Assembly (NCBI RefSeq): GCF_000315625.1
Contig: NW_005434601.1
Coordinates: forward strand, 358,011-422,010
Direction of reading: 5' to 3'
DNA from: Guillardia theta CCMP2712
Taxonomy: Eukaryota; Protista; Cryptophyta
DNA: 64,000 bases
Shown: piece after piece, positions 2,904-62,025 of the stretch
Layout: every line of letters begins with the position of its first letter
Numbering within the stretch: position 1 is the first letter of the stretch
Notes under the pieces: generated by a model
The model's database searches: none
Told to the model about the DNA's origin: nothing
What the model saw: only the letters and a program-made list of their open reading frames with translations
Made by a program: the position numbers and the translations under genes

Positions 2904-3807
2904 ATGGCGAGGATCCTTATGGTCGTAGCGGCCATGTGCATGCTGGGGGCTCTTGGGGCCGCAGAGGCCCTCGCTCCTCCTCTCACTCTGACGTCTTCCC
3001 CCTCTCTCCTCGCCCCTCGCCTCCTTCCCCTGTCCTCAGACTCCCTGCTTTCCGCTCTTGAGCAGGCCAAGCATGCCGGATTCAACCATGGCGCGATCCT
3101 CGCACTGCGGGTGAGAATGCAGGGCCCCGTGCTTCCTGAAGGCTCATGACGCATGGGAACTACAGGGAGGCAACGATGACGAGGATGGCGACTTGTTTGC
3201 TGATGGAGACGAAGAAACCACCGCTGCAGCAGAAGAGTTGAAGAAGAAAGCTGAAGCGGCCAAGGCAAAGTCATCAGGAGGACGAGGACCAGCGAAGACT
3301 GCGGTGGTGATAGACGTCAAAGGTTAATCTACTCATAGAAGTCACGATTCTGATCAACATACCAGGTCTTGATGAGAATACCGACTTTCAGGAGGTGGAG
3401 AAGTCTGCGCGAGAGGTCAGTTTCTTTGAATGTTTGATGTGCGACCATGCGAGGCAATGAGCGAGTGGCTGTCGTTCAGATCAAAATGGAAGGATTGCTG
3501 TGGGGTGAAAGCCACTTGGTCTCCATCGGGTTCCGTTGCCTTCCCTCACATCTCATCGTTTCTTACCATCGAGCAGGTACGGCCTCCAGAAGCTGCGGAT
3601 CACAGTGGTAGTGGAAGACGACAAGGTGCAGTCAAAGCGTGAAGCCTTGAAGTAATGTGAAACTTTTCCTGCAGGTCAGCATCGATGACTTGGAGGAAAC
3701 ACTTGGCGAAATCTCCGGAGTCCAGGTGAAGATATGCGACCCATGCAGACAGCAAGTAACCACGTATTTATTAGAGTGTTGACATCGTCTCCATGAACAA
3801 GATTTGA
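2904..3807 (+). CDS. EF1B: Elongation factor 1-beta/delta (EF1B GEF domain) with N-terminal signal peptide + transit-like leader ending in LRGG; 6 introns
   Basis: Spliced product MARILMVVAAMCMLGALGAAEA...AILALR|GGNDDEDGDLF...AKTAVVIDVKG|LDENTDFQEVEKSARE|IKMEGLLWGESHLVSIG|YGLQKLRITVVVEDDK|VSIDDLEETLGEISGVQ|SVDIVSMNKI* matches the EF1B C-terminal consensus. First intron 3111-3165. Confidence 0.9.
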
Positions 3808-3867
3808 TTCTTAGAGCTTAGAATATCACAAGAATGAATTCGAGCGCCCGTCAGCCTTTCTTCTCCC

Positions 3868-4588
3868 TCACCACGAGCACTGAAAGCCGAAAGCAAGTGA
3901 CAGCGCAGGCACTACACAGGTGGCGGCTGACCCGAAGAGGATGGCGACCTGCGAAGAGCCGATGAGCACAATCGCTCAAGATGTGTGGGAGTAGCTTACA
4001 GGAGCAGCAACGATAAGAATGAGATAGAAGATCGGATCCTCAAGAAGATTCATTGTTTGCGCGGTCTCGTCCTTCCTTTCCAGGGACCCGTTCAATGGCT
4101 GTGAACCTTTGTTATTTTCGCACACAGCAGCACACTGGCAGAAAACGATTACATTCAAAGTTCTCCCAAACACCGAGCGCTTCTGCTCCTGGGTTTTATA
4201 CCACTCGTTGCTCTCTTCCTCGATACCCCATCGTGATCCTCGTTGCGGAACCTTGCTTGGCTTCGATTTTGGCGAGAGAGGATCGCCTCCAACTCGTGAT
4301 CTGTGATCAAACAACATCATGTATGACTCAAAATCAAGAGGAAACGTACTCTCTGTCTGCTGAAGTCGTTCGTTCAAACCAGTTCTTGTCTACACCCACG
4401 GCAGTGGAGGGCACGTCGGTATCGACCAACGCGTCTTCCTCTGTCTTCCTCGCTTTTAGAATCAGGCAGCCCTGCCTGACCGAAGAGCAGGTTGAAGGAA
4501 GCTGCGCGCGCAAGGGAAGAGAGGAGGAGAAGGTGAAGGCATGCGCATGAGCTGCCAGCATGCACACGACGACCGCCCTGGCAGCCAT
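3868..4588 (-). CDS. Plastid-targeted protein of unknown function with C-terminal hydrophobic segment(s)
   Basis: MAARAVVVCMLAAHAHA-FTFSSSLPLRAQLPSTCSS is a signal peptide + AxA-F + Ser/Arg-rich transit peptide. The spliced C-terminus is EDPIFYLILIVAAP|VAILFGSAATCVVPALSLAFGFQCSW*. Confidence 0.7.
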
Positions 4589-5384
4589 GAGGCCGGGTAA
4601 AGGGATGCAGGTCGGGGGGCGTGTCATCCACTCCGCCTCAGAGCGACACTGAGGCGCACTCAGCACTCACTCAGTGCCAGACTCAGGCTCAGTGTAGGTC
4701 CGCGTCGCCGGCCCCAAAGCCATGATGTTCACCAATGCCATGAAGATGATTGCTGAAACTGAGTCCAGAATACATCATCTCTCTAGCAGTTTCAAGTGAA
4801 ACTTCGCTCAGCCGTCACTTCCCGAGTCCCATTGCTGCAAGCACTCGGATCCGATCCGAAATCACGGTTCGCGTTGACAAGTTTCGCAACTATCATCTTG
4901 CGGTCCGGGTCGTGGTGTGCAGGCTGCGAGAGTGTAGGAAAGCGATTGGTGTCAAACGATGAGGAGTAGTAAGAGGACAGGTGAAAGAACAAAGCGATGG
5001 CAAGTTTGATGTTGGGATCAGATTGCTTCAGGGAAACTTGTACACGAAGCATCAGATGAAGTTGACGAGCTTCATTGGATCGAGTTGGTCAAGATTCAAC
5101 GGGCCTCGCAGCTTTGGGTTGTCAGCAGGGTAGCCTGACATTCACCAACCGCGTTCCCGACTGAGTCCCGGCGGTGGGCACCTCCTGCAACCGAGGCAGC
5201 CCCGCCGAGAACTTCATGACGCCAAGTGAAATCAAGAAGTGAAATTCTCTGGCCTGGCTCACTGGGCTCAGCTCGGCATTGCCGCCGCCTTGAAGTCAGT
5301 TCTTCATCGACTTTTGAGTGCTCAACAGTCCGAGAATCTGCCAAAGAAAGCACAGTCACGGTGATCATGAAGAGCCCGTTCATC

Positions 5385-6452
5385 TGACCTGCAAGAGAGC
5401 ATCATATTCTTCCTTCTTCAACCTTTCTGCATCAAGAATCATCTTTTTGCCTTCAACCTGATAGGTTGGCCGTCAGCGGACATAAAATCAAATCAAGCAA
5501 GATTTCTACTTCAATGAAGAATGTTCGAATGTTCCGAAGCTGTTACACAAGAGTCACAGATGGAAAGTGATTCTGTTGTGCATACATCGGGAGGAGGAGT
5601 GTCAACACCCTTTGTGAAGAAACTTTTCATCAACGCAGGTTTGATGGCGGATGTATCTGCCTCGATCTTCTTGTCCGCAAGGAAGAAAGGGGTGTGTATC
5701 TTCACCTAAACCATCAACTTCACATCAGCCAACTTGTGAGGGTCTGCTTGGCTATCTTGATGACCTTCTTTGTGTTCAACATGGCGACTACTTTGGAAAT
5801 GTATCGATCTTGAAGCATGAGCGAGCTCCAGAATGCAAACCCGGAGAAGGCAAGAAGCCCTCCTCCGAACGCCAGCCTGTGTTGCAGGTCACACTTGCGC
5901 GCAGTCAGGCAAGAAAGCACTTAGTGAGTTCTCCAGTGAAGATAACCTGATCGCTGTAAAACATGCAAAATGACAAGGTGACCGCAAGCTGAATAGAAGT
6001 GAAGCATACTATTGCTCTGACAATGCATCAGTGTTCATCATGATCAAGAGCCAGCCCGTAACTCACCTGGGAAAGAATGCATGCGGCATGTCAATCTCCG
6101 TAGCTTCTACAAGGAATCTGTTCATGATAGGCTTCTCTGCTCGTGGTCTTGTGAAGTAGCTCACGGTTTTTTTGGTTGCATCATTTTCTTTGTTTGCTGT
6201 TGACAGATGTCTCCTTGTCGGAATCTCAAGGGGTGCAGTTTCTCGCCCGCACATAGCAGCACAATTACGTGACAACAGGGTTGAAAATAGTCGAGGAACA
6301 ATTGAACTCTGGTATTTTCCTCCAAACCAGACGCTGGATGAAGGCCTTGATATCCCGATTGCTGGGGACGGTCGACTCCGTAGAGCAGAACAAGCTCGTG
6401 CATGGCCTAGCAAGATCGCAGAGGCCGACTGAGGGCATACAGTATTGATCAT
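5385..6452 (-). CDS. Probable mitochondrial inner-membrane protein (TMEM70/TMEM186/TMEM223-like), multi-exon
   Basis: Arg/Ser-rich presequence-like N-terminus (MINTVCPQSASAILLGHARACSALRSRPS...RRHLST). A TM segment (HRLAFGGGLLAFSGFAFWSSLML) is followed by RYISKVVAML...VKIHTPFF and VEGKKMILDAE. Family call is by architecture only. Confidence 0.45.
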
Positions 6453-7137
6453 GATGGCTCCTCCTCCCCCCCATCCTCTTCCCCCCCCCCCCCTCCATCC
6501 TCCTCGGAGCACCACCTGGATCCTGATCCACGACGCCATTCCACGACCGTTATGGCAAAACCACATGTAACGGTTACACTTCCCGTCGACATTGAAACCG
6601 TCGACAGAAAAATGTAACCGTCATGGAGGCAGAGGGGGAGGACCAGGTGGCTGCAGGTGCGATTCTGAAAAAGAGTCTTTTCACTGGATAATGGATCTTG
6701 GATACAATTAGGGCAGGGACTGACCAGAAATCGCAACCTTTGGTTGTGTCACGTGAGAGATGCTTCTAAAAATACCATCCGATGACAATACCAAGTTATC
6801 GAAAACACTCTTTTTCACTGTAGCCTTTTTATTCAAAATAAGGTGGGGTGGGTGGGACAAAATCGAAACTGAACTGCGCGCCTGCGAGGGGTGGGTGAGA
6901 TCATAGTGATAAAGAGTAATTTAGGGGGTGGGGGTAGGTACCCCACCATTCAGATCCGTTTTCTTGACACAGAAGCGGAAGCGAGTAGGGGGAAGCGATT
7001 GCGAGGTGAAGGTAGAGCAGCTCGAGGAGAAGAGCACGTAATGATCTGCCCCTGATAGAGCGAGCAAGTAAAGCTCCAAGTCCTGCTCGGCTTGCTTTCA
7101 CACTCATAGCCCTGTTTCCTTCATTCGGTGAACAACA

Positions 7138-9546: not shown

Positions 9547-9661
9547 CTCCAGGAGAAGGTCGACAGTGTTATAATAGATGTGAAGTTTCTTTCGTGCCTT
9601 GCCCTTCTCTCCCTCCCTCCTACTTCTCCTTCGTCTTTGTTTACATCTCGTTTGTCTTTCT

Positions 9662-12266
9662 TTACTTCTTCTCCAGTCCCTCATACCTGCACATTCACGT
9701 TACCTCCTCCCTACCCCGCTTCCTCCTCCTCCTCCTCCTCCTCCTCCTCCTCTAGCTCCCCTACCACCTCCTCTATCTTATCATTTCCTTACCCTCCACT
9801 CACTTCCTCTCCTTACCATCTCTGCAGTTTCTCGCAGGCTCGCTCCATGTCTTGGGTGGCACCGGCGAAGCTGAAACGAATGAACTCTCCTCCTCGCGAG
9901 AGGTCGAAGTCCTGCCTCACGTCAGGCGGCCACCATGGGCCTCCTTGACTTCCAGTTCAAGCAGGCGATCGAGAAAAAGGGGATAGTCGAAGAGGAGGCG
10001 GAGGAGGAGGAAGGAGAAGAGTACGTAGAGGAAGGGGAGGACAGAGGAGAAGGGAATACCAAGCCGGGAGTGACGGCAACGGAGCAGCTGCGTCACGAGA
10101 GTGAGGACGGGGGAAGAGGAGGAGGCAGACTCACTCAGCGAGGATCTTCTTGGCGAGCTCCATGCTGTCCTTACAGCTGCATCTCATCTCAAACAAGCTC
10201 TCTCCTCCTCCCCTCCCCCACCCTGCGGGTCCCAGCATGTGCTTGACGTGCGCGTAGATGTAGAAGGCTCCCTGACGTATCGGTCAGAGATGAAAAGTAG
10301 AGGACGGAAGAAAGGGAGAGGAGGATGAAGAGCGAGGGAGGGCGTGGAGAAAGAGAAAGACGAGAGGTGGATGAGATGGAGCATGACGAGGTGAAGGAGG
10401 TTGACGAGGTGGTGGTGGTGGAGGAGGAGGAGGAGGAGGAGATCAGAAGGAGGAGGAGATCAGAAGGAGGAGGAGGAGGAGGAGGAGGAGGAGGAGGAGG
10501 AGGAGGAGGAGGAGGANNNNNNNNNNNNNNNNNNNNNNNNNNNNNNNNNNNNNNNNNNNNNNNNNNNNNNNNNNNNNNNNNNNNNNNNNNNNNNNNNNNN
10601 NNNNNNNNNNNNNNNNNNNNNNNNNNNNNNNNNNNNNNNNNNNNNNNNNNNNNNNNNNNNNNNNNNNNNNNNNNNNNNNNNNNNNNNNNNNNNNNNNNNN
10701 NNNNNNNNNNNNNNNNNNNNNNNNNNNNNNNNNNNNNNNNNNNNNNNNNNNNNNNNNNNNNNNNNNNNNNNNNNNNNNNNNNNNNNNNNNNNNNNNNNNN
10801 NNNNNNNNNNNNNNNNNNNNNNNNNNNNNNNNNNNNNNNNNNNNNNNNNNNNNNNNNNNNNNNNNNNNNNNNNNCGTACGAGGGAGGTGGAGGAGGAGGA
10901 GGAGGAGGATTGCGGACAAGGACCTGTGGCCTGCTGAGCTCGTGGAAGCCAGCCTTCGGGAGTCCATTAAGGAGAACCTGCAAGGCTGTGAGGAGACGCA
11001 GCGAGAAAGGAAGGGAATGAAGCATCGCTGGTCGGAACAAGGGGAAGAGAAAGCCGAGGAGGAGGACGGAGGCGGGGGAGAAGGAGTTAAGCACCTCTCG
11101 GTTTTTCTTGTACCGTTCGACATGTTGTTCCAATTCATCTATGCAATCAAATGCAGCAATTCCTGCAAAGAGAGTCGACGAGACGAGGAAGAGGAGCAGG
11201 AGGCGAGTCAGAAGGAGATCAGTCAGAGGGAGGCGGAGGAGAGAGGAAGGGTCACCAGCGAGCTGGGAGAGGGTGGGAGCGGAGATGAAGAAGTTCTGCA
11301 GGAGATTCTCAAAAGATTGAGCAAGCTGAGGATCCTGGCAGACGATCCATCCCAGTCGCCATCCTGTCATCGAGTAGTACTTGGAGAAGCTGTTGATGAT
11401 CACCTGCTCCTCCTTCAGTTCCCCCTTCCCCCTGCGCCTCCTCCACCTTCTCCGCACGCTCACCGCGTCCTTCTTGAACTGCAGCGCCGAGTCGGCGCGG
11501 CCCTCCATGATGATGCCGTGGTAGATCTCGTCGGAGATGAGGCGGATGCCGTGAGTCGAGCAGCAGGAGCAGAGGTCCTGCATCTCCGACGAGCGCAAGA
11601 TGGTCCCCGTGGGGTTGGAAGGAGAGGCGAGGATGAGCCCATGGATCTTCCCTCCCTTCATCGCTTCTTCCAGCATGGCGCGAGTTGGCTGCCAGTTCGT
11701 CTCCTCCCCCACTGGCAGCTCAACCACCTCAACTCCGAGAGCCTCTAAGATGTTGCGGTAGCACGGATACCCAGGAGAAGCCATTGCCACCCGATCGCCA
11801 TGGTCGAAGGCGCCAGTGAAGGCAACGATGAAGGCTCCACTGCTACCTGTTGTGACCAGCACACTACCTGCATCAACCTCCACCCCGTAGCTTGTCTTAT
11901 AGTGCCCTGCTATCTTCTCCCTCAGCTCCCGCACCCCTGCTGCCTCTGTGTAGCCCAGCTTCTCTTCCCCCTGCAATGCGGCGCTCGCAGCTTCCCTGAC
12001 CTGTAGCTCTGTCAACAACAACATCCATCCTCGCCTCTATCCTGGCTGCTTCCAACTTTACCCTCAACCTCACCCCCTCCGCTCCTTTCCTCCACTTTGC
12101 CTTCCCTCCTTCTCCTCCTCTCCTCTCGTTGTCCTCTCACCTTCCTGGGTGCAGGGGAGGAGGGCTGGCCGACTTCAAGGTGGATGGTCTCCTTGGGGTC
12201 CTTCGCCAGCGCCTCTCGCATCACCTCCATCACCAGGAACGCGCGCGTCCGCCCTCGCTCCGACAT
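9662..12266 (-). CDS. PLP-dependent aminotransferase class I/II (aspartate aminotransferase-like), multi-exon, spans the gap at 10517-10874
   Basis: IHLEVGQPSSPAP, GYTEAAGVRELREKIA, VTTGSSGAF, PGYPCYRN, SPSNPTG, ISDEIYHG, INSFSKYYSMTGWRLGW (PLP lysine), DFDLSRGGEFIRFSFA. Last exon (WYEGLEKK* at 9662, versus a stop at 9813) is uncertain. Confidence 0.9.
10517..10874. other. Scaffold gap flanked by (GGA)n; other gaps at 36004-36103, 54570-54669 and 56512-56611
   Basis: N runs adjacent to simple repeats. Confidence 0.98.
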
Positions 12267-12520
12267 GGCGGCCCCCCCGATACCGAGATTGAGGTGGGCC
12301 AGGAGGGGATGAGGGTATAAGAGTGAGGGGGATGATGCAGGGGAGGGCGGTATGAGGGGCTGTGGCAGCGGCACTGCTGGGGCGGGCCTGTGAGAGGGGG
12401 GAAGGGGGGGCAGGGAAGGGGGATGAGGGCGAAGGGGTATGAGGGAGATGATTTAATATGGCTCTTGGCGAAGGGTCAGGGTTTTTAAGAGGCGCCGTCG
12501 TCCCGCCCGCCGTCTAGACC

Positions 12521-13257: not shown

Positions 13258-13375
13258 GCTATCCGTTTGTATATGTGATTACGTAAACGGTTTCGAAAAA
13301 CTTCAATCGTGTCTGCGTTTCGGTTTTCTCCCCATCCCTCAACCCGATCTAGAAGATCTATTTTTATTCGTCATG

Positions 13376-15149: not shown

Positions 15150-15770
15150 CGTCCCTCTCGTTTCCCTCCTGCTCCTGCTCCTGCTCCTGCTCCTCCTCTC
15201 ACTCACCGCTGCTCGCAACCCCATGGCGACCCTTGGCCCTTTTCTTCAATGGTTCCTTATTTTACCGGTTCCTTGTATTAGAGATTCCCTCCTGCGGTTC
15301 TTTGTTTCAACGGTTCCTTGTATTCTCCTGAAAAAATCTTGTCCGAACATGAACGAGCAGCCGCAAGTCAGAGGATCAGGGGCTGCGAAGTAGACGGAGA
15401 CGGAGACGGAGACGCAGAGGGAGAGGGGGAGGGAGGGAGGGAGGGAGGGAGGGAGGGAGGGAGGGAGGGAGGGAAGGAGGGAGGGAGTGAGTGAGGGAGG
15501 GAGTGAGGGAGGGAGGGGGGAGAGAGAAGGAGGAAAGGAGGGAGAGGGAGAGACGAGAGGAGAGGCAGGGGGAGGAGAATGGGGGGGGGGGAGGAGGAGA
15601 GAGGCGACGCATCCTTACGGCTGCTCTACAGACCTGGATCTTCGGCTCAAGGACTATCGATGAACTGGCCCTGACTGCACGATTTGGAAGCCTTGGACTA
15701 GAGGAAGGGAGGAGGTGGAGGAAAAGACTAGAGGAAGAGACTTGAGAGCATCTTCAAGGAGAAAGGGTTG

Positions 15771-17066
15771 ATGTCTGCTGCTCTTGCTAGTAGAGCATCT
15801 GGCCTGTTCCTCGGCCTTAAGCTAGGCAGGCGGCCACATGCTCTGTTGCTGCTCCTGGTGCGTTCAATGGGCGCAATGAACGATTGTTTTGCGGGTGGAA
15901 GGCAGACGAGGAGCGTGATGAGGTTGCGAGGAGGATCGGCCGATGGGACCTGGAGGGAGCGCGGCACGGCGTTGGATGATGTCAGAGCGTACAGATCTTC
16001 TGTATTGGGAGAAACGTTCTTCCTTCTGACGTCAAAGGATGCAGACAAGTGGTACGGGTGTCCTCACTGCCAGTTCATCAACGAGCACACGTCTGTTCTC
16101 AAGCAGCACATTCTCAACCATACAAGCAAACCTGCTGGTAACTGCTCTGCGCTACCTGAAGCTGCCTGGAAGATGCGAGCAGTGCTGGCTGCAAGTCAGG
16201 GCGAGGTGCTGGAGTACGTCATCCAACAGCGAGCGGCAGGTCAGGATGCCAACGGCTCGCTCTGGGTTCCTTTCAGCGGTCAGCAGCAGGAGGCGAGGAT
16301 GCGTCGGCAGCGAGAGGAGGTAGGGAGTCAGGGAGGAGAGGAGACGAAGAGTGCGGAGAAGATGCGGAGAATATCTGAAGGGGAAGGCTGGGTCCCTCTT
16401 GTGGTGAAGGTGTACAACCAAAGCAGCAAAGAAATGCTCTGCTTGAACCTGCTCAGGAAGACGGAGACAACGATCCAGGAGATCAAGGAGGAGGTGAGGC
16501 TCAGCACCGGCATCCCAAGTGAGCTCCAACGAGCCGTATGTCGAGGAAGGTTCCTCAGGAACGGCAGCACCTTGCAGGAGTTGGCAGTGAGCAAGGAGGG
16601 TGGCCCTTGCTTGTACATCATTCCTGAGGTGGCAGAGGATGCAGGCGGGGACGAGTCGGGGGGTAGGGAGGCGAAGAACGAAAGCTTGCTGGTGAAGGAG
16701 GACTTGGGCAGGGCCTCTCCTGGGTCACTGCAGTCGAACTTAATGATTGCGAGGATGATTCAGCGAATGAGAAATTACCTGACGGGGGAGAACATCTCGT
16801 CGTCCCCAGTTGATCTCGTCCGCATGAATGAGTCGGCAGTGATCGAAGTGGGAGGGAGGCGACTCAACGTCACCTTCACCACCATCACTCCGACTAACTC
16901 GTCGATGTTCGACCGCGTGCTCGAGTTCAGAATGCCTGCCTTGGACCCGATTCTGCAATCAGACGGGCAGCTAGCTGAGGATGTGAGGGCGGACGGGACA
17001 GGCTGGGGAGGGTTTGGGGGAGGAAAGGAAGAGGGAGGTCAAGACAACGACATTTATGGAACCTAG
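15771..17066 (+). CDS. Protein with hydrophobic leader ending MRLRGG, a C2H2 zinc finger and a ubiquitin-like domain
   Basis: C2H2: WYGCPHCQFINEHTSVLKQHILNHT. UBL: TTIQEIKEEVRLSTGIPSELQRAVCRGRFLRNGSTLQEL. A further 3' exon to 17232 is possible. Confidence 0.7.
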   Translation: MSAALASRASGLFLGLKLGRRPHALLLLLVRSMGAMNDCFAGGRQTRSVMRLRGGSADGTWRERGTALDDVRAYRSSVLGETFFLLTSKDADKWYGCPHCQFINEHTSVLKQHILNHTSKPAGNCSALPEAAWKMRAVLAASQGEVLEYVIQQRAAGQDANGSLWVPFSGQQQEARMRRQREEVGSQGGEETKSAEKMRRISEGEGWVPLVVKVYNQSSKEMLCLNLLRKTETTIQEIKEEVRLSTGIPSELQRAVCRGRFLRNGSTLQELAVSKEGGPCLYIIPEVAEDAGGDESGGREAKNESLLVKEDLGRASPGSLQSNLMIARMIQRMRNYLTGENISSSPVDLVRMNESAVIEVGGRRLNVTFTTITPTNSSMFDRVLEFRMPALDPILQSDGQLAEDVRADGTGWGGFGGGKEEGGQDNDIYGT

Positions 17067-35502: not shown

Positions 35503-38500
35503 TCAAACTAGATCCCGCATCTTCTTCATGACCAGGTCCACCTGCTCCAGCACGTCAGCGGCAGGAAGGAGGCGAGAGCCGATGCCTCCTTGCGACGAGT
35601 CGAGCTCGTACTCTGCGAGAAGAAGATGCCTTGCCCTGGATCTCTCGACTGGAAGCAGCAGCGTCACTGGGGGGAGCACAGGAAGGTGCCTCTTGCCTTC
35701 TCGAGGATGGCGAGCAGGAGACGGAGGTCGATGTTGGGGTACGTCTGTCCTCGCTCCACCTGCCCCACTGCTGAGCTCGAGCTAGGGCTGGGGGTAACGG
35801 TACCTCGTCGAGGATGGGGAGGATGCTGGGGGCCACGAGGAGGTTGACGAGCTGCCGCAGGGGAGCGAAGCAATCCTTGAGGCCAGAGACCTGCTCCATG
35901 GTGACGCGGGTGGTGGTTGTGGAGGAGGAGGAGGAGGAGGAGGAGGAGGAGGAGGAGGAGGAGGAGGAGGAGGAGGTGTTGGTGGTGGTGGTGGTGGAGC
36001 AACNNNNNNNNNNNNNNNNNNNNNNNNNNNNNNNNNNNNNNNNNNNNNNNNNNNNNNNNNNNNNNNNNNNNNNNNNNNNNNNNNNNNNNNNNNNNNNNNN
36101 NNNCCAGCCCCTGCTTCAGCTTCTTCCCAACTGCTCCTGCTCCACCTCCTCATCAGCAGCGTGAAGAAGGCGGTCGACGCCTCTCATTACTCCTACTTGT
36201 CCTAGTCTACCAGAAGAAAAGCCTCCCCGACGTTACAAAAGAAGTAGCAGCAGCACCAGTGGAGGAGGCAGCAGAAGATCCTGTTTTCCATGTTGATGTA
36301 GAGGAGGAGGAGGAAAAGGTGGTGGATGGTGGTGCTTCATTCTGCTCCTCCACCCCCGCTATCATGAAGTGGAGGTGGGAGTGGTAGGAGTACTACGAGG
36401 ATGAGGAGGATGAGGAGGGGGAGGACGAGGTCGAGGAGGAGCTGGACCAGCTGGCGGTCGCCATAATCGTCATCGTCGTAGTCGTCGTCGGTGGTGGTGG
36501 TGGTGGTGGAGGAGGAGGAGGAGGAGGAGGAGGTGTTGGTGGTGGTGGTGGTGGAGCAACAGCAGGAACAGCTTTCATGAGACCTTTGATTCGATTGCGA
36601 AGGCTTCAAGAGCATGCAGGTCCTTGTCAAGCTTCTGGAAGGCGTTGAAGAAGATCTTCTTGACGCTGTTCCTGGGGTTCAGCACGAGGAGGAGACGCGA
36701 AGGCTACCTGGAGCTGAGAGGCTGCTGATAGAGACGCTGAGCGATGGCGTTGAAAGCCTTGTAGTGGAGGGCCTCTAGAGCAGAGTCAGGGTGATGGAGA
36801 GATGAGGAGGAGGAGGGAAAGGAGAAGAGGAGAGAGGACGAGAGCAGAGGGAAGTGGCGGAGGGCGGAGGGGAGGAAGAGCACAACCTCGAACGTGAGAT
36901 GGTAGAGAGATGAAGGTGGAGAAAGTAGATCCTGCTTTCAACTCAACCAAGACCAAAGGAACTGACGGAAATAGAGGAGGGGGAGAATAGGGGGAGGGGG
37001 AGGGGGAGGGGGAGGGGAGAAAGAGGAGACAAGGGATCGAGGTATCCTCACGGAGGTAGGCGACGAGGTCTAGGATGTAGTCTGAGGGCTGGTCCATCTG
37101 CTTCATCGAGGACGGCGCCCAGTCGAACTCTGCGACTCCTCGGTCCATGATCTCGTTCACCTGCCCCCAGTCAGCCACGTCCGCACTGCCCCGCCCATCG
37201 ACCACCTTGGCCATCACGGCAGAGAAGAGAAGGTCCTCCGCCCCGCTCCTGGAATGAACTTCAGCTCCTCCCCCAACCCCTCAGTCGTTCCCTTCCTCCT
37301 CCTGATCATCCTCCTCCTGATCCTCCTCCTCCTCCACGTTGTCGTCTTCCTTGTCCTCCTCCTCCTCCTCCTCCTTCTCTCACCTCGCTCGCTGAAACGC
37401 CTCCGAGGATCGCTCTACGCGCTGCTGGATCGTTTTGATCCCAGCCACTGCAGATTTCTCGCTCGGGGCGAGATGGAGGTAGAGGGAGCCCACGTAGCTC
37501 ATCAGCTGCTCGCAGCTTTGGCTAACAACCTGCCACCAATGTCACGATGCTGCTACTCCTCCTGCTCCTCCTCCTCCTGCTCCTGCTCCTCCTCCTCATC
37601 ATCATCCTTCTCCTTCTCCTTCTCCTTCTCCTCCTCCTTCTCCTCTTCCTTCTGATCCTCCTCCTTCCTTACCTCAGTGTTTACGCAGATCTGCAGTGCA
37701 AGATTGATCGGAACTTTCTGCCCCCCTCGCATCTGCCGGCTGCGTCAGGAGGAGCGACGAACGGCAGCACCTGCCTCGATGTAGGGATGAAGCGGACGAG
37801 TCATCTCCTCGCTGAGGACCTCCCGGAGGAACGTCTCCAGCGCTGCTCGAGCGAGGGATCAGCGGGAAGGGAGGAGGAGGGAGGAGGAGACGGAAGATGG
37901 AAGAGGGAGAGGAGGGAGAGATGGAAGGGTGAGGGGGGAGAGAAAGATACTTTCAAGGACCGTCTCACGGTCCGACGCAGCTTGATCGGTGAAGGAGGAC
38001 AGGTCGAAAGCCAGGTTCTTGCAGATCTTGACACGAGTCATGGGAAGGAGGAGGAGGAGGAGGAGGAGGAGGAGGAGGAGGAGGAGGAGGAGGAGGTTGG
38101 AAGTTGGTAGGAGGAAGAGGAGGAGCAAGAAACACCTGCAGAAGTCTCGGAACGCTGCGCGAGAAGGACATGGTAACAGTCTTGAACTTCTTGCTGCTTC
38201 CTTGTCAGGATTCCTCGCTGCCTTCAGAAGGTTTTGATGACTCACCTCGCCTTGCTCTCCTCCGATGACATCTCAAAGTGTGTAAGCTAGCAAACGCTCA
38301 GTCATTGACCTGCTCCTCCTCCTCCTGCTCCTCCTCCTCCTTCTCAATCCCCTTCCCTCTTTTACCTGATGGTCAACAACGAGTCTCTCATAGTCTGTGG
38401 GGCTTTCAACACGGAGGGGATCATGGCTGCCAAGATCAAACGGATCAGCGCTCTCTCCATTCTCCATCTACCCCTTCCATCTTCCGAGCTCCTTTCCCCC

Positions 38501-46317: not shown

Positions 46318-47618
46318 ATGGCCTTGCGGGCGGTACGTGGCGATCGCGGAGGTGGAGGAGGTGGAGGAGGAGGTGGAGGAGGAGGAAGGATGAACATACG
46401 GAGAGGAAGAGGTAGAAGAAGACGGGAGGGCAGTAAGAGAGATGAAATGCTGCTGCTTTCTTAAGGGTACCGAGCAGCCGAGGTATTCGTGGAGCTTTCC
46501 GACATAGGTCGTAGGACAGGAAGGTAGAGCTGAGGCCAGTCGAGGGATGTCAAGTCCTTGACGAGCCTTCGTTTTCTGTCTCGCGATGACTTGAAGTCTG
46601 TTGCTGCTGGCACACTCTACTGTGTCATGCTCCACACCAGCTGCACCCACTGCGAGTACGGGAATCGAAGTTGTCAACTGATTCGGTGTGCAGGTTCTCG
46701 TCCTCGCCTCTCTGGGCTGTGTCTCTGCGTTTCAACATGCAGGTGATATCATGATCGCACTCCTCGTCCTCTCTCTTGGTCACCCCATGAGCAGGACTGT
46801 CTCTGGGGTCTAACAACCGCCATGTTGCCCTCTCGTCCTGCCTGCAGAGGAAGGCTTGTTCGTTCGGGGACATGAAAAAAAGAACTTTCCTCCGCAGCTC
46901 TGAGAACCAAGAGTCACCGACTGAAGACAACGGCAGCACAGTCGAGATCTCCAAGGAGGAGCTCATCAAGCTCGCCGAACAGGCTGGCGTGAAGGTGAAG
47001 TTCGCGAGCGACTACCTGCAGCAGGAGGAAGCGGCACAAGGTGAAGGTCGGGAGCCTCGATGCTGCTTCATGACGAGCTCCTTGCAGCCAGAGAGCAGCA
47101 GCCATCTGGTCCCAGCATGTTCGAGCCAGCGATCAACGCCCTCCAGCCCATCCTCAAACTCCCTCCCATCCTCCAGTACCCAGCGTTGATCCTGATCTTC
47201 GGGGCCGTCTCTGCCATCTTCCTCCCGCTCTTCGGGTCGGGCTCGATCAAGGACATGAAGTCAGACTCTCCTCCTGCTCCTGTCGCTTCCACCGCAACCC
47301 CCGAGGCGACCAAGAAGGTTCCAACTGCCGGTGAGGACTCCTACAAACCCTCTCCCCCTCCTCTTGACAGGGCGCAGCCGATCCTTCCAACGACATCGCC
47401 CCTAAGGTCCTTCAGATCCAGAGGAAGTCGTGCGACGTCTTCCCCTACAGGTGGGTCGACCTCTCTGTTGAGACCTCACCTCACTTTCCCTCCCCTCCCG
47501 GCAGCCTCACGCCGACCTGCACTGATCCGGACATTGGAAACAAGGCGATCCTCAAGGTGACTTTCCTCTCCCCCGTCTTCCTTCATCAGTCGTCTTCCTT
47601 CATCAGTCGTCTTCCTCT

Positions 47619-47665
<47 letters not shown>

Positions 47666-53629: not shown

Positions 53630-53639
53630 GGATGAGAGC

Positions 53640-56600
53640 AAGTGTGTGTGAACTTGTGTAGATTGAAAAAAGTGCCCTGAGCTGCTGCTCGCCTTTCTTG
53701 CCTAACAGGCCATGACACCCCGTTCCTCCCCCGCCGCTCTCACGTCACATGTTGCATGTACTCCTCCATTACAGCCCTTCTCTTCCTCCTCCTCTCCTCA
53801 AGCTCGCGCTCATCTGGCTGTCATGGCGCGCATGCTTTGCCCGCTGCTCCGCCTGGAGGCACTAGACGGAGGCTTCGACACCTTCCTGTCCTCTGTTGGC
53901 TTGTGTCCGACAGAGAGGGCGAAGAGAGCTTGCTTGGCAGCTGGGAGGCTGCTGGCGTCGTAGCTGCTCATGATCCTCTGAATCTCCTTGATGGCAGTCT
54001 GAGATGAAGTTAGGAAGAACGAGGAAGAGCAAAGGCAGGAGCAGAGGAGAGGAGAGGAGAGGAGGGGAAGGGAGGGGCGGGGAGGGGAGAAGAGAGGAGG
54101 AGGCAGAGGTAGGAACGATAGTTTCACCCAGTCTCTGTGTGCGTCTCCAAGGGTAGACATCTGTAGAGCTTCAGAGGGGAGGAGCAGGAGGGCAGGGGAG
54201 CAGGTGAGTACCGCCTTGTATGCCGAGTTCCTCACCGCCCAGTCCTTCTCTTGTGCCTGAGGAGCAGCCGAGTGAGGGGGGACGCGAGCCGCGTCGTCTC
54301 TTCACCCGCAGCAGGAGGGCGTTGAGCGCTGCCTTGTCGTGCTTCGGGAGAGCAGGGCGAGAGCCTTGCAAGCGTTGGAGCGGACGAGCCAGTCAGGATC
54401 CGAAGAGGACATGTCGATGAGCTGCAAGACGGTCAGAGGAGGAGGAGGAGGAGAGGAGGAGGAGTCGTACCAGGAGGAGGAGGAGGACGACGAGAGGCGA
54501 TATGCACGGCAGCGATCGTCCCTCCTCTCATCTCATAATCATCTTCCCGTGATCCACCAGCTCCCTCCCNNNNNNNNNNNNNNNNNNNNNNNNNNNNNNN
54601 NNNNNNNNNNNNNNNNNNNNNNNNNNNNNNNNNNNNNNNNNNNNNNNNNNNNNNNNNNNNNNNNNNNNNGGGAAGAGGGAGGGAGGGAGGGAGGGAGGGA
54701 GGGAGGGACCAAGAGAGATTTTGTGTTCTTGTTTGCAAGGAGAGGGAGGACAAAACAATTTCACATCACCTTCAGTGCTTGCAAGGCTTCCACGCAAACC
54801 TGCAGCAAGTGCTACATCAGAACATCCTATCCCTCAACTTTCCTTCCTCTTCCTCCCTGTCTCCCCCTCTGTTTCTCCTCTCTGTCCTCTTCATCCCCGC
54901 ACTGCCATCTTGTCTTCTCCCTCCTCTACCTCTCCTTGCTGCCCTGGACCATCCCCCGCAAACGTTGAATCCACGTTGGCTATGACGGCGGCGGTGAGCA
55001 TGGGGTTCATGCTGCGAAGGAGGTGGTGCTCCTGCAGCAGCTTCACTCGTGCTGCTACTAGAGGAGGAGGAGGAGGAGGAGGAGGAGGAGGAGGAGGAGG
55101 AGGAGGAGAAGGAGGAGGAGGAAGAGGAGGAAGAGGATGTTGACCTGTCGGAGGCCGCTGAAGCTCCGCAGGATCTTGAGACGCTCTTGGATCTTTGTGG
55201 ATGGATCCAGGAGACTGACGGGGCTCGGTGAGTGAAGGAGGGAGGGGAGGGAGGGGAGGTTGTGGGGAGAAGGATAGAAGAAAGAAATGTGATGGACGGG
55301 AAGGAGGGAATGAAGGAGGGGAGGAACGATGAGAGGAGGAACGAGATAGAGGGAGAGGTGTAGGGAGGAAGCAAAAACTCACGCTGCTGTGACGTCTTTC
55401 CCTCCACGAGCCGACAGGTGCATCGAGTCTGGGCGTTTGGAATAGAGACGAGAAGTTGCAGGACGAAGAGGGTCAAGCGCGAGAGATTGACGAGGACTTG
55501 AGCGAGCTGTCTTGGCTGAAGGAGGAGGAGACTCAGATGAGAAAGAGGAAGAGGAAGAGGAAGAGGAAGAGGAAGAGGAAGAGGAAGAGGAAGAGGAAGA
55601 GGAAGAGGAAGAGGAAGAGGAAGAACGAGAAAGAACAAGACCAAGTCGGGAAGCGAGAGGGAGGGGTTGGAAGGTTGATGAACTTCGGTAGGATAGCAGG
55701 ACTGATTATGAAGTCGAGGAGGGAGAGGAGGGGGAGGAGAGGGAGGGGAAGGAGGAGGTAACCAACCTCTTCGCTCCTCCAAGTCCGGCAGCTGAGGAGG
55801 GATGCGCTCGGAGGAGGGAATCTTGAGCTTGAACTTGTTTTCCATGATCGAACCTCTCTGTCCATCGCGATCAGTTTCTCCTCCCTCCCGCTCCCTTTTC
55901 AGTTACCGTCCTCCTGCTGACGGAGCGGGAGGGAACAGAATTTCTTCCTCCTCCTGGTGTTCGGCGTTCAGCTTCGAGGAGGATCATGCTCGGGTTACCT
56001 TGAGCGCGCTTCGGAGGAGCGTCGGACTCGTTGGAGATGGGCGACTTTGCTTCCATGGCCGTGGGAGATTCTGAGAGAAAACGATTAAGAGAAAGAAACG
56101 AGAGCAGAACGAGGAGGAGGAGGAACAGAAGGAGAAGAATGGAGAAGGAACAGACCTGCAGGAGATGCAGGTTGATGGTGTTGCTGTTTGCCTGGAAGGG
56201 TGGAGGTCAATGGAGGAAGAGATGGTAGACGGCGACGAGGAGAAGGTGGCGGAGGAGGAGAAGGTGGCGGAGGAAGAGAAGGTGGCGGAGGAAGAGAAGG
56301 TGGCGGAGGAGGAGAAGGTGGAGGTGGAGGAGGCTTTGGGTCACCGATCTGAATCTTCGCGTTCCTCAAAGTCCGTCTCACTGACTCCTTGATCCTCCTG
56401 ACTTCCACGTCAATCATGCTGATTGCTCCTCCTTCACTCTTCCTTCCCTTCGCCCCGTTCTCCCCCCCCCCCTTCTCCCTTCCTCCTCTCTCTCGTCTCT
56501 CTCTCTCTCCTNNNNNNNNNNNNNNNNNNNNNNNNNNNNNNNNNNNNNNNNNNNNNNNNNNNNNNNNNNNNNNNNNNNNNNNNNNNNNNNNNNNNNNNNN

Positions 56601-59260
56601 NNNNNNNNNNNCCCCCCTTCCCTCCTTCCTCCTCTTCTCCTGTTGTCATCAACTCTCCTCCTCCTCCTCCTCCTCCTCCTCCTCTTCCTCCTCCTCCTCC
56701 CTCTACCTCTGTTGCTTGTGGTGCTCTACCCAGCTTGCAAAGCACTCGTTCACCTAGGGCAGGACGATCAGTCGAACGCAGCAGGAGCCTCGTCCTACCT
56801 TTCCCCCCTTCCAGTTCAGGACCAGCTGGCGACTGACCCCAGCAGAAGTTCTCAGCTCATCTGGTGGGTCACGTGACCTCTCTCACCTCACGTCCTCCAG
56901 CCTGTGCTTGTCGATGTTGGCCAGCAGCCCGTGGCTGCGGAAGATGACCTGAAGCTCTAGAGTGCATGTGAGGAGGGAGCATGTGCCCCTGCTCCCTGCT
57001 GCTCCCTGCTCCCTGCTCCCTGCTCCCTGCTCCCAGCTCCCAGCTCCCAGCTCCCAGCTCCTCCTCTCATTCTGCTGTCCAACTATGGTTTCTCGTTCTC
57101 ATCATCCTGGAGCCCTTGTCCTCATGTCCCCACTCTCCTATTCTTTCTGCCCCCTTTCTCTTTGGTGGATCCTCCACCTTCTCCTCATCCACCTTGCCCT
57201 CTTCCTCTTCCTCGGCTTCCTCTATCCATCTTCTCCCTGCTGTTCCTCCTCCTCCTGTCCCTCCTTCTCCTCCTCCTCACCTTCTTTCTTCATGATCTTC
57301 TTGATCGTGTCCACAGCAGCATACCGAACCTTCACCGCCCCCCGGCCCCTCGTCAATTCCTCACGGTCATTTTCTCACCTCTCTGCCTCACCTGCACGTT
57401 GGAGTCTTTCAGGGCGTACAAGACGCTGTCGACAGCCGTCTGGTCCCCCTGCCGGGCGATCTGCAGGCGGGGGGTCAGGCATGTAGATCAACTTCGTCAT
57501 GCTTGCAACGGGCAGACAGTGAGAAAGAGCACCAGCGGTGAGGGAGCGAAGTAAGGAGGGGAGGGAGGAGAGGGAGACAGGAGAGGGGAGGAGGAGGAGA
57601 GGGTGACAAGACAGGGGAGGGAGGGAGCAGATGGAGGAGAGGATGAAGAGGAGGAGAGGGAGGGAGGGAGGGAGGGAGGGAGGGAGGGAGGAGAGGAGGA
57701 CATCGACGGGAAAGGCACGTTCGCAGCTATGGAGAAGGATCGTTCTCTGTGTTTCTCCTACTCTTCTCACCTGCCGCAGCCCCTGGACCGCACAGACTCG
57801 ATTCCTGGGGTCAGAATCCTTGATAAGAGCCGAAACCTGCAAGGAAATGAGAGATTGGACGAGGAGAGCGAGTAGTAGTTGCCATAGGAGGAGGAGGAGG
57901 AGGAGGAGGAGGAGGAGGAGGAGGAGGAGGAGGAGGAGAACTCATAGGAGGAGGATGAGCCATAGGAGGAGGAATCATGATCCTTAAGGTCCCATCACAC
58001 GATGTCACAGTTCAATCACCATGGCGATGATTTGGGAGTCCCCGGGCTCGACGATGCTCGCTATCATCGAGAGCGCCTCCTGCCTCACCTGCACACCCAT
58101 CGCCTCGTCACCATCGTGCCTCCCCCTCCCCCGCCTCCTCCCGCCCCTCCTCAGCTCCCTCTCTCACAGCCGAGGAGCGGTCGCGCAGTGCAGCCTGGTA
58201 GATCTTCACAGCGGGCGGATGTCCTCGGGAGCAGACCTCTGCTATCAGATGCACTGCCTCCACTTTCACCGGCACGTTCGCGTCCACTTTGGTCTGCAGG
58301 AGCGACGAGACGGCACTGATGACATCAGCGTCGTCCTGCTCCGCCAGGTTGGAGAGGGTTCGCGCCGCTTTCCCCCGCAGCTCGGTAGGGCAGGAGGGAG
58401 AAGTCAACATACCCAGCATCGCTCCTATGACCTTCCTGTCCCCGCGGTTGGCGAGAAACTGAACGATGCCCAAGGCGCTCTCCTTGGTCGACTCGTCCTC
58501 CCCCTGAAGGACATCGATCGCATGCTGCAGGACAGGCTCAGTGCAGGTCTCAGCCGACCACCTATCCCCGTCACCTGGATCGCAAGGACTTTGTACTTGG
58601 GGGTGTGGAGCAACGAACGGAGGGCAGCGAAGTGAGGAGGACCGGACGGGCAACTGGCGTCCCTCAGAGTCTTCGCTGCTGCAACACGCACGTGCATCTC
58701 TCCGTGCAGGCAAGAGAACAGCTTCTCGACTGTCAACCCGTCTTCCTGCCAGGGCCAACGTCAACTTGTCAAGTTGAACTTGACAGCAGCAAGATCACAT
58801 CATGTACCTCACTGCTCTCGTCCTGGTGGGTCTCTTTGATCAGAAGCCTCGGGGACTTGCTGCTAGGGGCCCTCTGCAGGTCTTTCATCCTTCTCTCTGC
58901 TATCTCGATATCGCGCGTGTTGGCAATTTTTTCGTCTGCTCCGTCGTCATGGAATGCGGCAGCGGTCTTGCAACAAGGTCAGGCCAGGAGAACTCCTGAT
59001 GTCATAGGAGGCAGTTCACCTTCTTGTCCTTGCCCTGAGCAGCGAGCTGCTCATCAGTGACTGAGCTGGCGAAGCTGTGCCGGTAGCTATTAATAATGGC
59101 TTCTCCTGAGGAGCGAGTGATATCGCTCTCCCTCAACATCCTGCATGGTTGAGGATCATGAAAGCTCCTCATGAGAACTTGAACGTTGACTCAGCTCCGC
59201 ATCATCTCCCTCTCCTCTTCCCCCTGCTGCTGCTCCCTCCCGCCCCATGTCGTCCTCCCT
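53640..59260 (-). CDS. HEAT/armadillo-repeat protein (one long gene or two adjacent genes), spans two gaps
   Basis: HEAT-like units LQGEDESTKESALGIV, CPTELRGKAARTLSNL, NVPVKVEAVHLI, LRDRSSAVRE, LIKDSDPRNRVCAVQGL, DPDWLVRSNACKALA. Exon linkage across the gaps is not resolved. Confidence 0.55.
55540..55625. repeat. (GAGGAA)n hexamer microsatellite, probably intronic
   Basis: About 13 perfect units, directly visible. Confidence 0.9.
56236..56325. repeat. 18-bp minisatellite GAGGAGAAGGTGGCGGAG x~5
   Basis: Translates as EEEKVA repeats in the ORF track; probably intronic. Confidence 0.8.
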
Positions 59261-59679
59261 TCCGCCATCGCCCCGACGGCGACCGTTAGATTCTTGACAA
59301 GCAGCAACAAGAACTTCGGAAAAAACCGGCCCGGTATGTGGCCTGCTGAGGCGGGCTGCCTTGGGAAACTTCGAAGTCCAAAGTTTGTTTGAAAAGTTTG
59401 GTGGTACAAGTTTGGAAAAGTTCATTCGCCATGGGCGAACGGAAGGGGAGAGGAATAGGAGGAGGCGGAGGAGGCGGAGGCGATATGCACGGCAGCGATC
59501 GTCCCTCCTCTCATCTCATAATCATCTTCCCGTGATCCACCAGCTCCCTCCCTCCTCCCTCTACTCGTCTGCCCCCTCCTGCTTGTTTTATCGAGATCCG
59601 CCCTCTGCCCGGACAGTCTCCAATGCAAGTTAGCGCCAATACTGCCTGAAGACCTGGCGTGTTCCTCCTACTCATCCAC

Positions 59680-62025
59680 ATGAACACGAAGGCGCAACTT
59701 ATCCTGATCCTCTGCCTGGCTCTGAACATCTCCGGCAATCCGTCATGGCATCCCCTTTCCCCGCTCCCCCCTCCCCCAACTATCGCCCATCGCATGCAAC
59801 AGAATCAAGTACTTCTCTCACTCCGATTGCGAGGAGGACGGAAGAAGTATGGCATCTCCTTCCCCGATGACATGGCAAGCATCAAAGTAGCCGTCAGTAG
59901 CTCTCTCGCGAGCCGCGAGCCCCTCATGATCCGGCGCGGCATCTACAAATGGAACGGCCAGATTTTCATACTTGAGGGTCAGAGGTTGGTCCTGGCTGGC
60001 CCCGATCCTCCGGCAGGAGAGCATGCTCCTAGTCCAGAGATCCCCAACTCCTCCAACGAGACCCAGCGCGTTCCCTGTGTCCTCCTGGGCTCCTGGTGCA
60101 TGACGGAGGGCAGCCATGGCGCTTTTTGCGACAATGTGCTGCTGCTCCATCAGAGTCTGGGCTCACGAGGAGTGCAGGAGACTTCAAGGGCCGCATGCTT
60201 CACGTTGCAGGGGGGACCATGGTACCTCGAGCGCGTGCACGTCTGGAGCCACGGCGGGGTAGCGATGTTCTGCCAGTGGTACTCCAACACGGTCGTCAAG
60301 GAGTCGGGGATAGGTGAGGACCCTGGCGGGTCGCATGCTCTTCAGCTGCCGCTCCTTCTCCTCCCCACTGACGTTCCCTTCCTGCTGGCCAGGAGGAGAG
60401 TCGGACGAGAGGGACTTGAGGGCCTACCGCGCGATCGAGATGTTCGACAGCAGCCGTTTCGAGTGCGACCGATTGCCGATTCTGCACGGCTCTTCCTGAC
60501 TTTTGTTCTTGCCCAGAGCGTCCTTGTGCGAGATAGGCAACACCACGGGATCGATTTCTTGGCTGAAGGAGGGCCACAACCGTGAAGATCCGAGCGGGGA
60601 GAAGCAGGAAGAAGCTTCAGAAGTCCGTGAGCTGTCGAGCATCGACCTGTCTGATGGCTCCAAAGAGAGTGAGCGGAGTTCGGGAGGAGGAGGAAGATTG
60701 ATGAGATTTTCTTCCAGATCAGGAGATGGAAGTTGTCTCTGAACAATTCGGCTGTGCCCTTTGCATCCGAGACGCCTCGTTTGCGTCCTTCTTTCAAAGG
60801 TTTCAGCCCTATCCCCCCTGATGAACCCACCTGCTGACAGCTTTGTTTTCCCCTTTCTGCCTCCCTCCCCTCTCCTCCCAGCACCTTGAGCAGCAATGGA
60901 ATCGCGTTCGACATCGACGGAACCATCCGCCTGTTGCTCAACGCCTCCCTTGTGAAGCCATGTGAGCGTCTGTCCTCTCGCCTCTTCCCTCATACGTGTT
61001 ATCTGGCAGGTGGAGAGGGAACTTTCAAGAGTGGGGAGGACTGCGAGAACAGCGCGATCAGCATGATGGAGACGATAATCCATGGTACTCGGGTATGGAT
61101 AGGAGACAGAAGGCCAGGGATCCTTGGTAAGCAAGGAGGAAACGAACGAAGAGGACTTGAGGGGAGGGGAGAGTACTTGGGAGAAAAGTCACGGTTCTGA
61201 GGGGAGGATTGGGGTGGGGGAGGGGGGGTAGTGGTGGAAGAGGAGCCAGAAATGAACACTGGTGGAAGAGAGGCTGACGACAATACTTCAGGGGACAGGC
61301 ACAAAGGGGAGACAGCCCTCGAGTTCACGACCTTCGTCGATGGGGATGATGCATCTGGCAGTGAAGAGAGGGAGAAGGAGAGAAAGAGACGATACCTCCG
61401 GGACCAGGGCAAGGTGGGCAAGAACGTGGACTTCATCATGGAGGATGTGGCGGCACCTCGTGAACTTGACGAACTCGATCCGGCTCTCTTCGTGAAGAGT
61501 GATAGCTCTGGCATCGATAAAGGACAGGGAGGGGAAGACTGGTCAGGGGAAGGCACTAGCACAGACACAGCCGTCGCTCCTTCAGCAAGTAAACCGAAGG
61601 AGCAGGAGACTTCCAAGAAAATGAGAAAAAGACCGACGGCGAGGAAGGCAGCGGAGGAGGGAGGGGGGGTACAGAAATCACGAAGGGGGACCAGGAAGAA
61701 GGAGCAGGGTGAAGGACAAGAGCAAACTCCCAAGAGAAGGAGGACGAGAAAGAAGAAGGAGATTGAGTTGCAAGATGAGGAGCAAGCAAGGGCTCAGTCT
61801 TCTTCTCAAGGTAGCCGTTCCTTGCATGACGACGAAGCGCTGGAGGCAGAGGGAGAAATCAAGTCTGAAGGCAAGACAATGAGATTCTCTGTGTTGTCTG
61901 CCGTTCCAAACTCTGACTCTCAGAATGCAGAAGAAGAATCCCGGCTTGAGCTACATCAGCTCGTGCAGACTGCCATACGAGCTCCTCCAAAGGAACCTGA
62001 CGCCTCGGACGGGGACCATGCTTGA
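59680..62025 (+). CDS. Signal peptide + LRLRGG leader protein with putative beta-helix (pectin-lyase-like) region and charged low-complexity C-terminus
   Basis: MNTKAQLILILCLALNISG...LLSLRLRGG-RKKYGISFPDDMASIKVAV...LMIRRGIYKW...CFTLQGGPWYLERVHV...SNGIAFDIDG. Last exon is ORF 61231-62025. The fold call is inference. Confidence 0.6.

Follow-up and report, generated by a model that had tools for sequence, protein, structure and literature searches.

When a deubiquitinase cuts a ubiquitin precursor, any residue except proline may follow the cut, and the protein downstream comes free with its N-terminus in native form. The coronavirus papain-like protease, which has a USP fold and is also a deubiquitinase, cuts LXGG sites in non-ubiquitin chains. 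Here, similar tails are described in a 64-kb window of the Guillardia theta nuclear genome ("the window" being the whole stretch of DNA that was analysed), in which an EF-1beta-like protein, a C2H2/ubiquitin-like (UBL) protein (gene 2) and a third protein encoded from position 59680 (gene 3) have N-terminal leaders ending in Leu-Arg-Gly-Gly (LRGG). We propose, with moderate confidence, that the three are encoded in the nucleus and belong to the periplastid compartment (PPC), a relict of red-algal cytoplasm that contains the nucleomorph, and that they have bipartite leaders that would be cut after the Gly-Gly (GG), most likely by a PPC protease that reads ubiquitin tails. LRGG is probably an undescribed cut-here mark of periplastid import.

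In complex red plastids, sorting between PPC and stroma and the removal of PPC presequences are unsettled, and the sole accepted rule is whether or not an aromatic residue follows the signal peptide. As summarised in PMC12136025, PPC-type bipartite signals of cryptophytes and diatoms (Gould et al. 2006) likewise pair a signal peptide with a transit-like spacer that has a non-aromatic residue after the cut, as would be so at the cuts placed by eye in the EF-1beta-like leader (Leu) and the gene 3 leader (Asn), and several reference PPC proteins in PMC12136025 bear the same LRGG leader type. The published PPC rule covers 25 residues around the signal-peptide cut, whereas LRGG lies 20-55 residues beyond, at the far end of the leader. 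The stromal processing peptidase cuts diatom stromal transit peptides at their end, where a loosely defined A/S-L-x motif is found (Huesgen et al. 2013, PMC3774753). Like the LRGG leaders, stromal transit peptides are Ser/Thr-rich, acid-poor and positively charged presequences behind a signal peptide that are removed after import; unlike PPC leaders, stromal leaders start with Phe (AxA/F; slashes in sequences mark cuts or junctions) and are without LRGG. In the full-text literature on periplastid, Guillardia, cryptophyte, nucleomorph and transit peptides, and on SELMA, the translocon derived from endoplasmic reticulum (ER)-associated degradation (ERAD), no description of an LRGG or LRLRGG mark was found, though a remark in Gould et al. 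2006 is possible, and no paper proposing a deubiquitinase as transit peptidase was found.

At the level of the tail, positions P6-P1 of ubiquitin and NEDD8 precursors are identical to those of the gene 3 leader (LRLRGG) and the EF-1beta-like leader (LALRGG), respectively, and the gene 2 leader ends in MRLRGG. The precursors have a beta-grasp fold before the tail, whereas the LRGG leaders have a short, fast-evolving and disordered-looking spacer. The coronavirus LXGG sites resemble the leaders in being a ubiquitin-tail-like cut mark within a non-ubiquitin polypeptide, so that a USP fold can act on the tail alone; however, they belong to a viral polyprotein rather than to organelle import and have no sequence relation to the LRGG leaders. 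A comparable enzyme is ptDUP, the PPC deubiquitinase proposed for the SELMA of diatoms, a USP-family protein with a bipartite leader that, as cited in PMC12412216, is thought to act on imported PPC proteins (Hempel et al. 2010); the role proposed for it there is the removal of ubiquitin from imported proteins, not the cutting of leaders. A 2025 phylogeny reported the diatom ptDUP to be without a cryptophyte counterpart and asked which enzyme replaces it (PMC12412216).

LRGG-ending leaders of three genes in the window

The original prediction had placed LRGG near the N-termini of three unrelated proteins, and translation confirmed the motif in each, always at residues 50-71 behind a hydrophobic start and a Ser/Thr/Arg-rich spacer, the hydrophobic core being short in gene 2. 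Signal-peptide cuts placed by eye read AEA/L (EF-1beta-like), ISG/N (gene 3) and MGA/M (gene 2), none of them aromatic. Coordinates of all features are listed in Table 1. Assembly gaps in the window total 658 N (10517-10874, 36004-36103, 54570-54669 and 56512-56611) and lie outside all three genes (2904-3807, 15771-17063 and 59680-62025), so that continuity across the gaps is irrelevant to the finding.

In the EF-1beta-like gene, the motif (…AILALR/GG, LRGG at residues 68-71) is split by intron 1, with its Leu-Arg encoded at 3105-3110, and the GG directly precedes the acidic EF-1beta region, as had been stated for this leader. The junction reads GG/NDDEDGDLFADGDEE, and the predicted mature chain begins six residues ahead of the acidic DLF motif. 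Joined in frame, the seven exons of the model encode 198 aa, and the six introns between them, all GT-AG, measure 43-64 nt; if intron 1 is read through, a stop codon comes after 12 codons. The spliced model (…GYGLQKLRITVVVEDDKV…VQSVDIVSMNKI, then stop) carries what we take to be the C-terminal signature of the EF-1beta family. Pfam EF1_GNE (PF00736) matched window positions 3578-3637 at profile positions 43-62, with 16.8 bits against a cut-off of 20.8, and the score is under the cut-off because the match covers a single exon. The N-terminal EF-1gamma-binding domain of cytosolic EF-1beta is absent and the leader stands in its place. The hydrophobic core of this leader scores 2.85 (Kyte-Doolittle), and the leader exon matched no Pfam family, ubiquitin included. 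It was also observed that the leader coincides almost exactly with exon 1.

In gene 2, the first ATG of the open reading frame (ORF) lies at 15771 and the leader reads …RSVMRLRGGS, with LRGG at residues 52-55 (nt 15924-15935). Pfam gave a ubiquitin match in the mature part that stays under the cut-off (E=1.3e-4, 22.1 bits). The sole match besides G. theta's own protein was an orthologue in Hanusia phi, 49% identical over the whole mature part, whose recorded sequence starts M-I-L-R-G-G-S; LRGG is thus kept in a record that has no upstream part.

Gene 3 starts with the ATG at 59680 and its leader runs to …LLSLRLRGGRKKY, LRGG being residues 50-53 (nt 59827-59838), with a hydrophobic core scoring 2.95 (Kyte-Doolittle). 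The annotated 622-aa protein (P0003) shares the N-terminus read here, and no Pfam family matched it or any of the leader exons. Homologues were found by exhaustive HMMER search, and two environmental ones have signal-like starts and leaders whose ends, …VQRLRGG and …FLSLRGG, align column for column with the gene 3 motif. The leaders of the family are otherwise unalignable, and alignable sequence begins a few residues past the GG.

Proteins with the same leader type across the genome

The six-frame translation of the window contains 12 contiguous LRGG in ~128,000 codons (~1e-4 per codon), which gives a chance of ~0.006 for LRGG to fall in the 60-residue zone of one leader; for three leaders at once, chance is negligible. 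Pattern searches covering 87.1 Mb in 669 contigs returned 353 matches to the LRLRGG codon pattern, compared with 255 for a backwards control and 193 for the permuted GGRLRL. An excess of the motif behind signal-like starts over background, for which the original prediction had suggested a count, was found by comparing the first 30 LRLRGG-type places in genome order with 30 permuted GGRLRL places, a place being counted as a leader when a Met and a hydrophobic core lay in the same ORF 25-115 residues ahead of the motif. By this measure, 16 of 30 LRLRGG places but only 2 of 30 permuted places had such a leader (Fisher p=1.4e-4). Scaled up, this corresponds to roughly 120-250 genes with signal peptide plus LRLRGG, to which the LALRGG and MRLRGG variants, two-thirds of those in the window, would be additional.

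The composition of 19 leaders, taken from the L003-L029 sample and the window genes, was transit-peptide-like (R 2-7, D+E mostly 0-3, S/T 2-14, K mostly 0), with 23-58 residues from the hydrophobic core to the GG. The P5 residue varies (R, A, S or P). It was observed that the spacers leading from the core to LRGG are nearly without lysine (0 Lys in 13/19); in diatoms, leader lysines have been reported as necessary for SELMA passage.

The original prediction that this leader type targets the PPC was well supported by proteins of published location. L017 encodes histone H2A with a signal peptide and the leader end …ADLSLRLRGG/QDAGEKK, and the gene-specific parts of the published primers for cloning nucleomorph H2A map to it exactly; G. 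theta nucleomorph H2A was cloned and placed in the nucleomorph by immunofluorescence (Onuma et al. 2017). The three nuclear H2A genes are without N-terminal extension. Furthermore, of the eight G. theta proteins that the ASAFind 2.0 table gives as localised to the PPC by green fluorescent protein (GFP), six have the motif (PMC12136025; Table 1), and the symbiont Cdc48 of the same published PPC set ends its leader in …CMRLRGG, as gene 2 does. L015 has a leader equal to the one in gt_84077, a published G. theta protein. Reciprocally, the motif is rare among plastid proteins, with three LRGG strings in all among 101 plastid proteins of cryptophytes in a published set, and it separates two FBPase paralogues, of which the ASA/F copy is without the motif and the non-F copy carries ALRLRGG. 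In Thalassiosira pseudonana, PPC homologues read by eye have leaders ending in FDLRGG (Der1-1), LSLRGG (TrxH), FQIRGG (sSec14) and DIGRGG and LSARGG (two Cdc48s). From the leaders, targeting of the EF-1beta-like and gene 3 proteins to the PPC is a well-supported prediction, and that of gene 2 a reasonably supported one. A PPC location of EF-1beta would fit, since 80S translation also takes place within the PPC and the EF-1alpha of that compartment bears the same leader type.

Two stromal leaders in the window had been cited as contrasting cases without LRGG. The one given at 4588 is indeed without LRGG, but it lies on the minus strand, with its ATG at 4627 or 4588; the SA-F leader given at 46318 was not recovered, as nothing leader-like is found there on either strand. 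The ORF at 46318 reads MALRAVRGDRGGGGGG…, its Gly run coming from a GGA repeat.

Probable cleavage after Gly-Gly and a candidate enzyme

The motif repeatedly adjoins the start of the mature protein. In EF-1alpha, LRLRGG/GKEKHHCSIVVIGHVDSGKS (GKEK…) continues with the native N-terminus without its Met, and position 1 of the Pfam GTP_EFTU profile falls at residue 4 past the GG. Likewise, LRLRGG/MKLFTHNLL continues with the start of a Trm112-like protein. A Met, which has one codon, follows the motif in 16 matches compared with 5 in the control, although some of these are polyubiquitin repeats. Pro follows the pattern in 9 of the 353 genome-wide matches, none of the nine with a signal-like upstream region, and occupies P1' in none of the 19 leaders. 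These junction features are as a scissile bond after GG would give, and the position of the junction, an ancestral Met that is retained at P1' where Pro is never seen in leaders, and the conservation of the motif in otherwise unalignable leaders together make cleavage directly after Gly-Gly probable.

Based on these features, import may proceed as follows. The signal peptide would give entry into the ER, followed by a Ser/Thr/Arg-rich, Lys-poor and acid-poor transit-like spacer of about 20-55 residues with no aromatic residue past the signal-peptide cut. The spacer would end in [L/M]-x-L-R-G-G, copying the tail that ubiquitin has as LRLRGG and NEDD8 as LALRGG. Once the protein has passed the SELMA translocon, its leader would be cut directly after Gly-Gly; the native N-terminus would thereby be set free and the transit signal lost, and the protein would remain in the PPC. 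For this step, a PPC-resident deubiquitinase that reads ubiquitin tails would be the most likely enzyme.

An indication of such an activity comes from the PPC-targeted ubiquitin gt_155024 (ASAFind 2.0 Appendix S3), which consists of a signal peptide, a ubiquitin-like segment that has decayed and ends in LRVRGG, one ubiquitin (MQVF) and SY. Given this make-up, an activity that processes ubiquitin precursors must exist in the PPC. It was also observed that gt_155024 may represent a surviving stage on the way from ubiquitin fusions to LRGG leaders. Upstream regions were scanned for leaders in 20 of the ~34 USP/UCH genes, the three UCH (C12) genes (G000:C19:490691-491686, C274:18757-19555 and C8:880457-880540) lying outside this sample, and a USP gene, L081 (G000:C13:3100-6300, +; USP encoded at G000:C13:4750-8000), was found in which ORF 1654-2967 has a signal peptide and …SLLSLRGG/DD…, and the exon at 2945-3199 encodes the Cys box, GLENLGNTCYM. 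By eye, L081 looks USP14/Ubp6-like, and a ubiquitin-like stretch after its leader was not confirmed by Pfam; it is a candidate PPC deubiquitinase, and a different gene from ptDUP. A deubiquitinase as the leader-cutting enzyme is a plausible conjecture because six residues copy the ubiquitin tail, an activity of this kind is required by the PPC ubiquitin precursor, and the same leader is borne by a USP gene. Since no beta-grasp fold of ~70 residues precedes the tail, the leaders are not members of the ubiquitin family and copy the tail alone.

Weighing of the explanations and further features of the window

Several observations weigh against the proposal that these leaders are PPC signals cut after GG by a reader of ubiquitin tails. 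Most deubiquitinases need the ubiquitin fold besides the tail, and the leaders are too short (about 20-55 residues past the core) and too variable to form it. The GFP-tested PPC proteins hemE and iddi and two further gene 3 homologues are without LRGG, and the motif is therefore not obligatory. The signal-peptide calls come from a crude Kyte-Doolittle hydrophobicity rule, not from SignalP. For gene 2, the predicted signal peptide is weak and the annotated start lies downstream of it, the annotated protein beginning at Met36 (MNDCFAGG…) without a hydrophobic N-terminus. The EF-1beta motif rests on a predicted splice (3110/3166). Moreover, none of the searched PPC peptides or x-RGG contexts was present in the supplements of diatom N-terminomics.

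The shortness of the leaders bears directly on which enzyme would cut them. A dedicated peptidase other than a deubiquitinase, for example of the M16 type, might cut PPC leaders at the motif because it favours L-R-G-G; we regard this as rather unlikely, though it would agree with leaders that have no ubiquitin fold for most deubiquitinases to bind, with the peptidase of diatom stromal transit peptides having a loose motif of its own, with the variation at P5 and with diatoms keeping x-R-G-G only. However, 15 of 26 exact LRLRGG copies among the sampled sites, roughly half, have all six ubiquitin-tail residues behind a signal-like start, more than a generic motif needs, and the EF-1beta leader copies the NEDD8 tail LALRGG. 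The PPC, in addition, already needs a cutter after LRLRGG/LRVRGG for its own ubiquitin precursor, and viral proteases of the USP fold cut LXGG in non-ubiquitin chains. The motif might, on the other hand, be read without being cut, as a sorting or retention element bound by a part of SELMA or Cdc48 or halting transport across the envelope. The separation of PPC-type from stromal F-type leaders by the motif would be accounted for in this way, and with Lys-poor spacers (0 Lys in 13/19) a mimic of the ubiquitin tail might replace ubiquitylation; yet we judge an uncut element improbable, since the motif adjoins the first residue of native EF-1alpha (GKEK), of the Trm112-like protein (MKLFTHN) and of ubiquitin (MQVF), the ancestral Met is kept directly past the GG, the lack of Pro at P1' points to a scissile bond and not to a patch for binding, and an unstructured tail of 40-60 residues would be odd on EF-1alpha, H2A or ubiquitin.

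That the three motifs arose by coincidence, or from mis-called N-termini in a GC-rich genome, is very improbable. The 12 LRGG in the six frames of the window lie mostly in non-coding frames, the annotated start of gene 2 differs and the EF-1beta motif hangs on a predicted splice, all of which speak for coincidence or artefact; but chance is rejected on the permuted-pattern control (16/30 vs 2/30), the motif occurs on published localised proteins and is kept in homologues, the N-terminus of gene 3 is that of the annotated protein, and the six introns of the EF-1beta model match one another and leave it clean. A host-targeting motif of the RxLR/PEXEL type was also considered and dropped, as the residues misfit and, in this organism, an alga, LRGG is borne by published PPC proteins. 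The proposal of PPC leaders cut after GG, most likely by a ubiquitin-tail-reading protease, is thus the one that we prefer. A wider version of it is tentative and, in our view, possible rather than likely: the PPC transit peptidase would be a deubiquitinase in cryptophytes and, with the weaker x-R-G-G, also in diatoms, ubiquitin fusions would be what the leaders either arose from or came to resemble by convergence, and the cut at GG would decide between PPC and stroma.

With a fixed L-x-L-R-G-G, the proteome of PPC and nucleomorph, which probably comprises a few hundred genes in G. theta, would become simple to predict, and expression and structural studies would have exact N-termini of the mature proteins to work with. 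If true, a ubiquitin-tail protease as presequence peptidase would tie the ERAD-derived SELMA to processing and fill the ptDUP gap in cryptophytes. The window itself would gain three PPC assignments, namely an EF-1beta for translation in the relict cytoplasm, a zinc-finger/UBL protein and a conserved protein without known family.

Table 1. Leader, mature-part and intron features in the window, and GFP-localised G. theta proteins bearing the motif
Feature	Positions	Strand	Localisation	Basis
EF-1beta-like gene, exon 1: leader with signal-peptide-like start MARILMVVAAMCMLGALGAAEA, spacer, end …HGAILALR	2904-3110	+		translation, hydrophobic-core scan
EF-1beta-like gene, intron 1: 55 nt, GT..AG, dividing the motif between R and GG	3111-3165	+		predicted splice, size class as other five introns
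EF-1beta-like gene, exon 2: begins GGNDDEDGDLFADGDEE; GG codons 3166-3171, then acidic DLF(A/G)xxDEE region	3166-3322	+		translation
EF-1beta-like gene, exons 3-7: predicted guanine-nucleotide-exchange domain, end …VQSVDIVSMNKI, stop	3366-3415, 3480-3529, 3577-3625, 3675-3725, 3775-3807	+		in-frame model
Gene 2, leader: 55 aa, weak core HALLLLLV, spacer, …VMRLRGG	15771-15935	+		translation
Gene 2, mature part: CPHC..HxxxH zinc-finger-like segment and weak ubiquitin-like domain (residues 231-274)	15936-17063	+		Pfam, homology
Gene 3, leader: 53 aa, signal-peptide-like start MNTKAQLILILCLALNISG, Pro-rich spacer, …LLSLRLRGG (LRLRGG 59821-59838)	59680-59838	+		translation, C73:417831
Gene 3, mature part: several exons, conserved GPWY..HGG domain, Lys/Arg-rich C-terminal stretch	59839-62025	+		homologue alignment
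Stromal-type bipartite leader …MLAAHAHA/FTFSSSLPLRAQ… (AHA/FTFSS), without LRGG	4337-4627	-		translation
ugg-t, …MSLRGG			PPC by GFP	ASAFind 2.0 table
EF-1alpha, …MLRLRGG			PPC by GFP	ASAFind 2.0 table
14-3-3, …ALRLRGG			PPC by GFP	ASAFind 2.0 table
RRM1, …PLRLRGG			PPC by GFP	ASAFind 2.0 table
CyP, …ALRLRGG			PPC by GFP	ASAFind 2.0 table
Ubc8, …IPLRGG			PPC by GFP	ASAFind 2.0 table

Further observations concern the surroundings of the three genes and their relatives. At 61560-61760, the Lys/Arg-rich end of gene 3 (…KKMRKRPTARKAAEE…PKRRRTRKKKE…) resembles a nuclear localisation signal, which would suit a nucleomorph protein. Divergent from the EF-1beta-like gene, a minus-strand ORF of more than 841 aa runs from 2525 off the start of the window; it has a strong signal peptide (MSLPVLIAALLVFLPVVAG) and is without LRGG or a Phe leader, and the two starts are 378 bp apart (2526-2903 between). 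Elsewhere in the genome, the top EF1_GNE match was L061 (G000:C4:1193170-1196355; 23.4 bits), a 216-aa ORF unlike a typical EF-1beta, and a cytosolic EF-1beta gene was not located by this profile search. The DNA upstream of gene 2 (15500-15620) is purine-rich (GGA/GAG) and of low complexity, and long CTN-type repeats at 37254-37700 give poly-Leu ORFs near 37.5 kb; these two low-complexity stretches account for false signal-peptide-like ORFs in simple scans.

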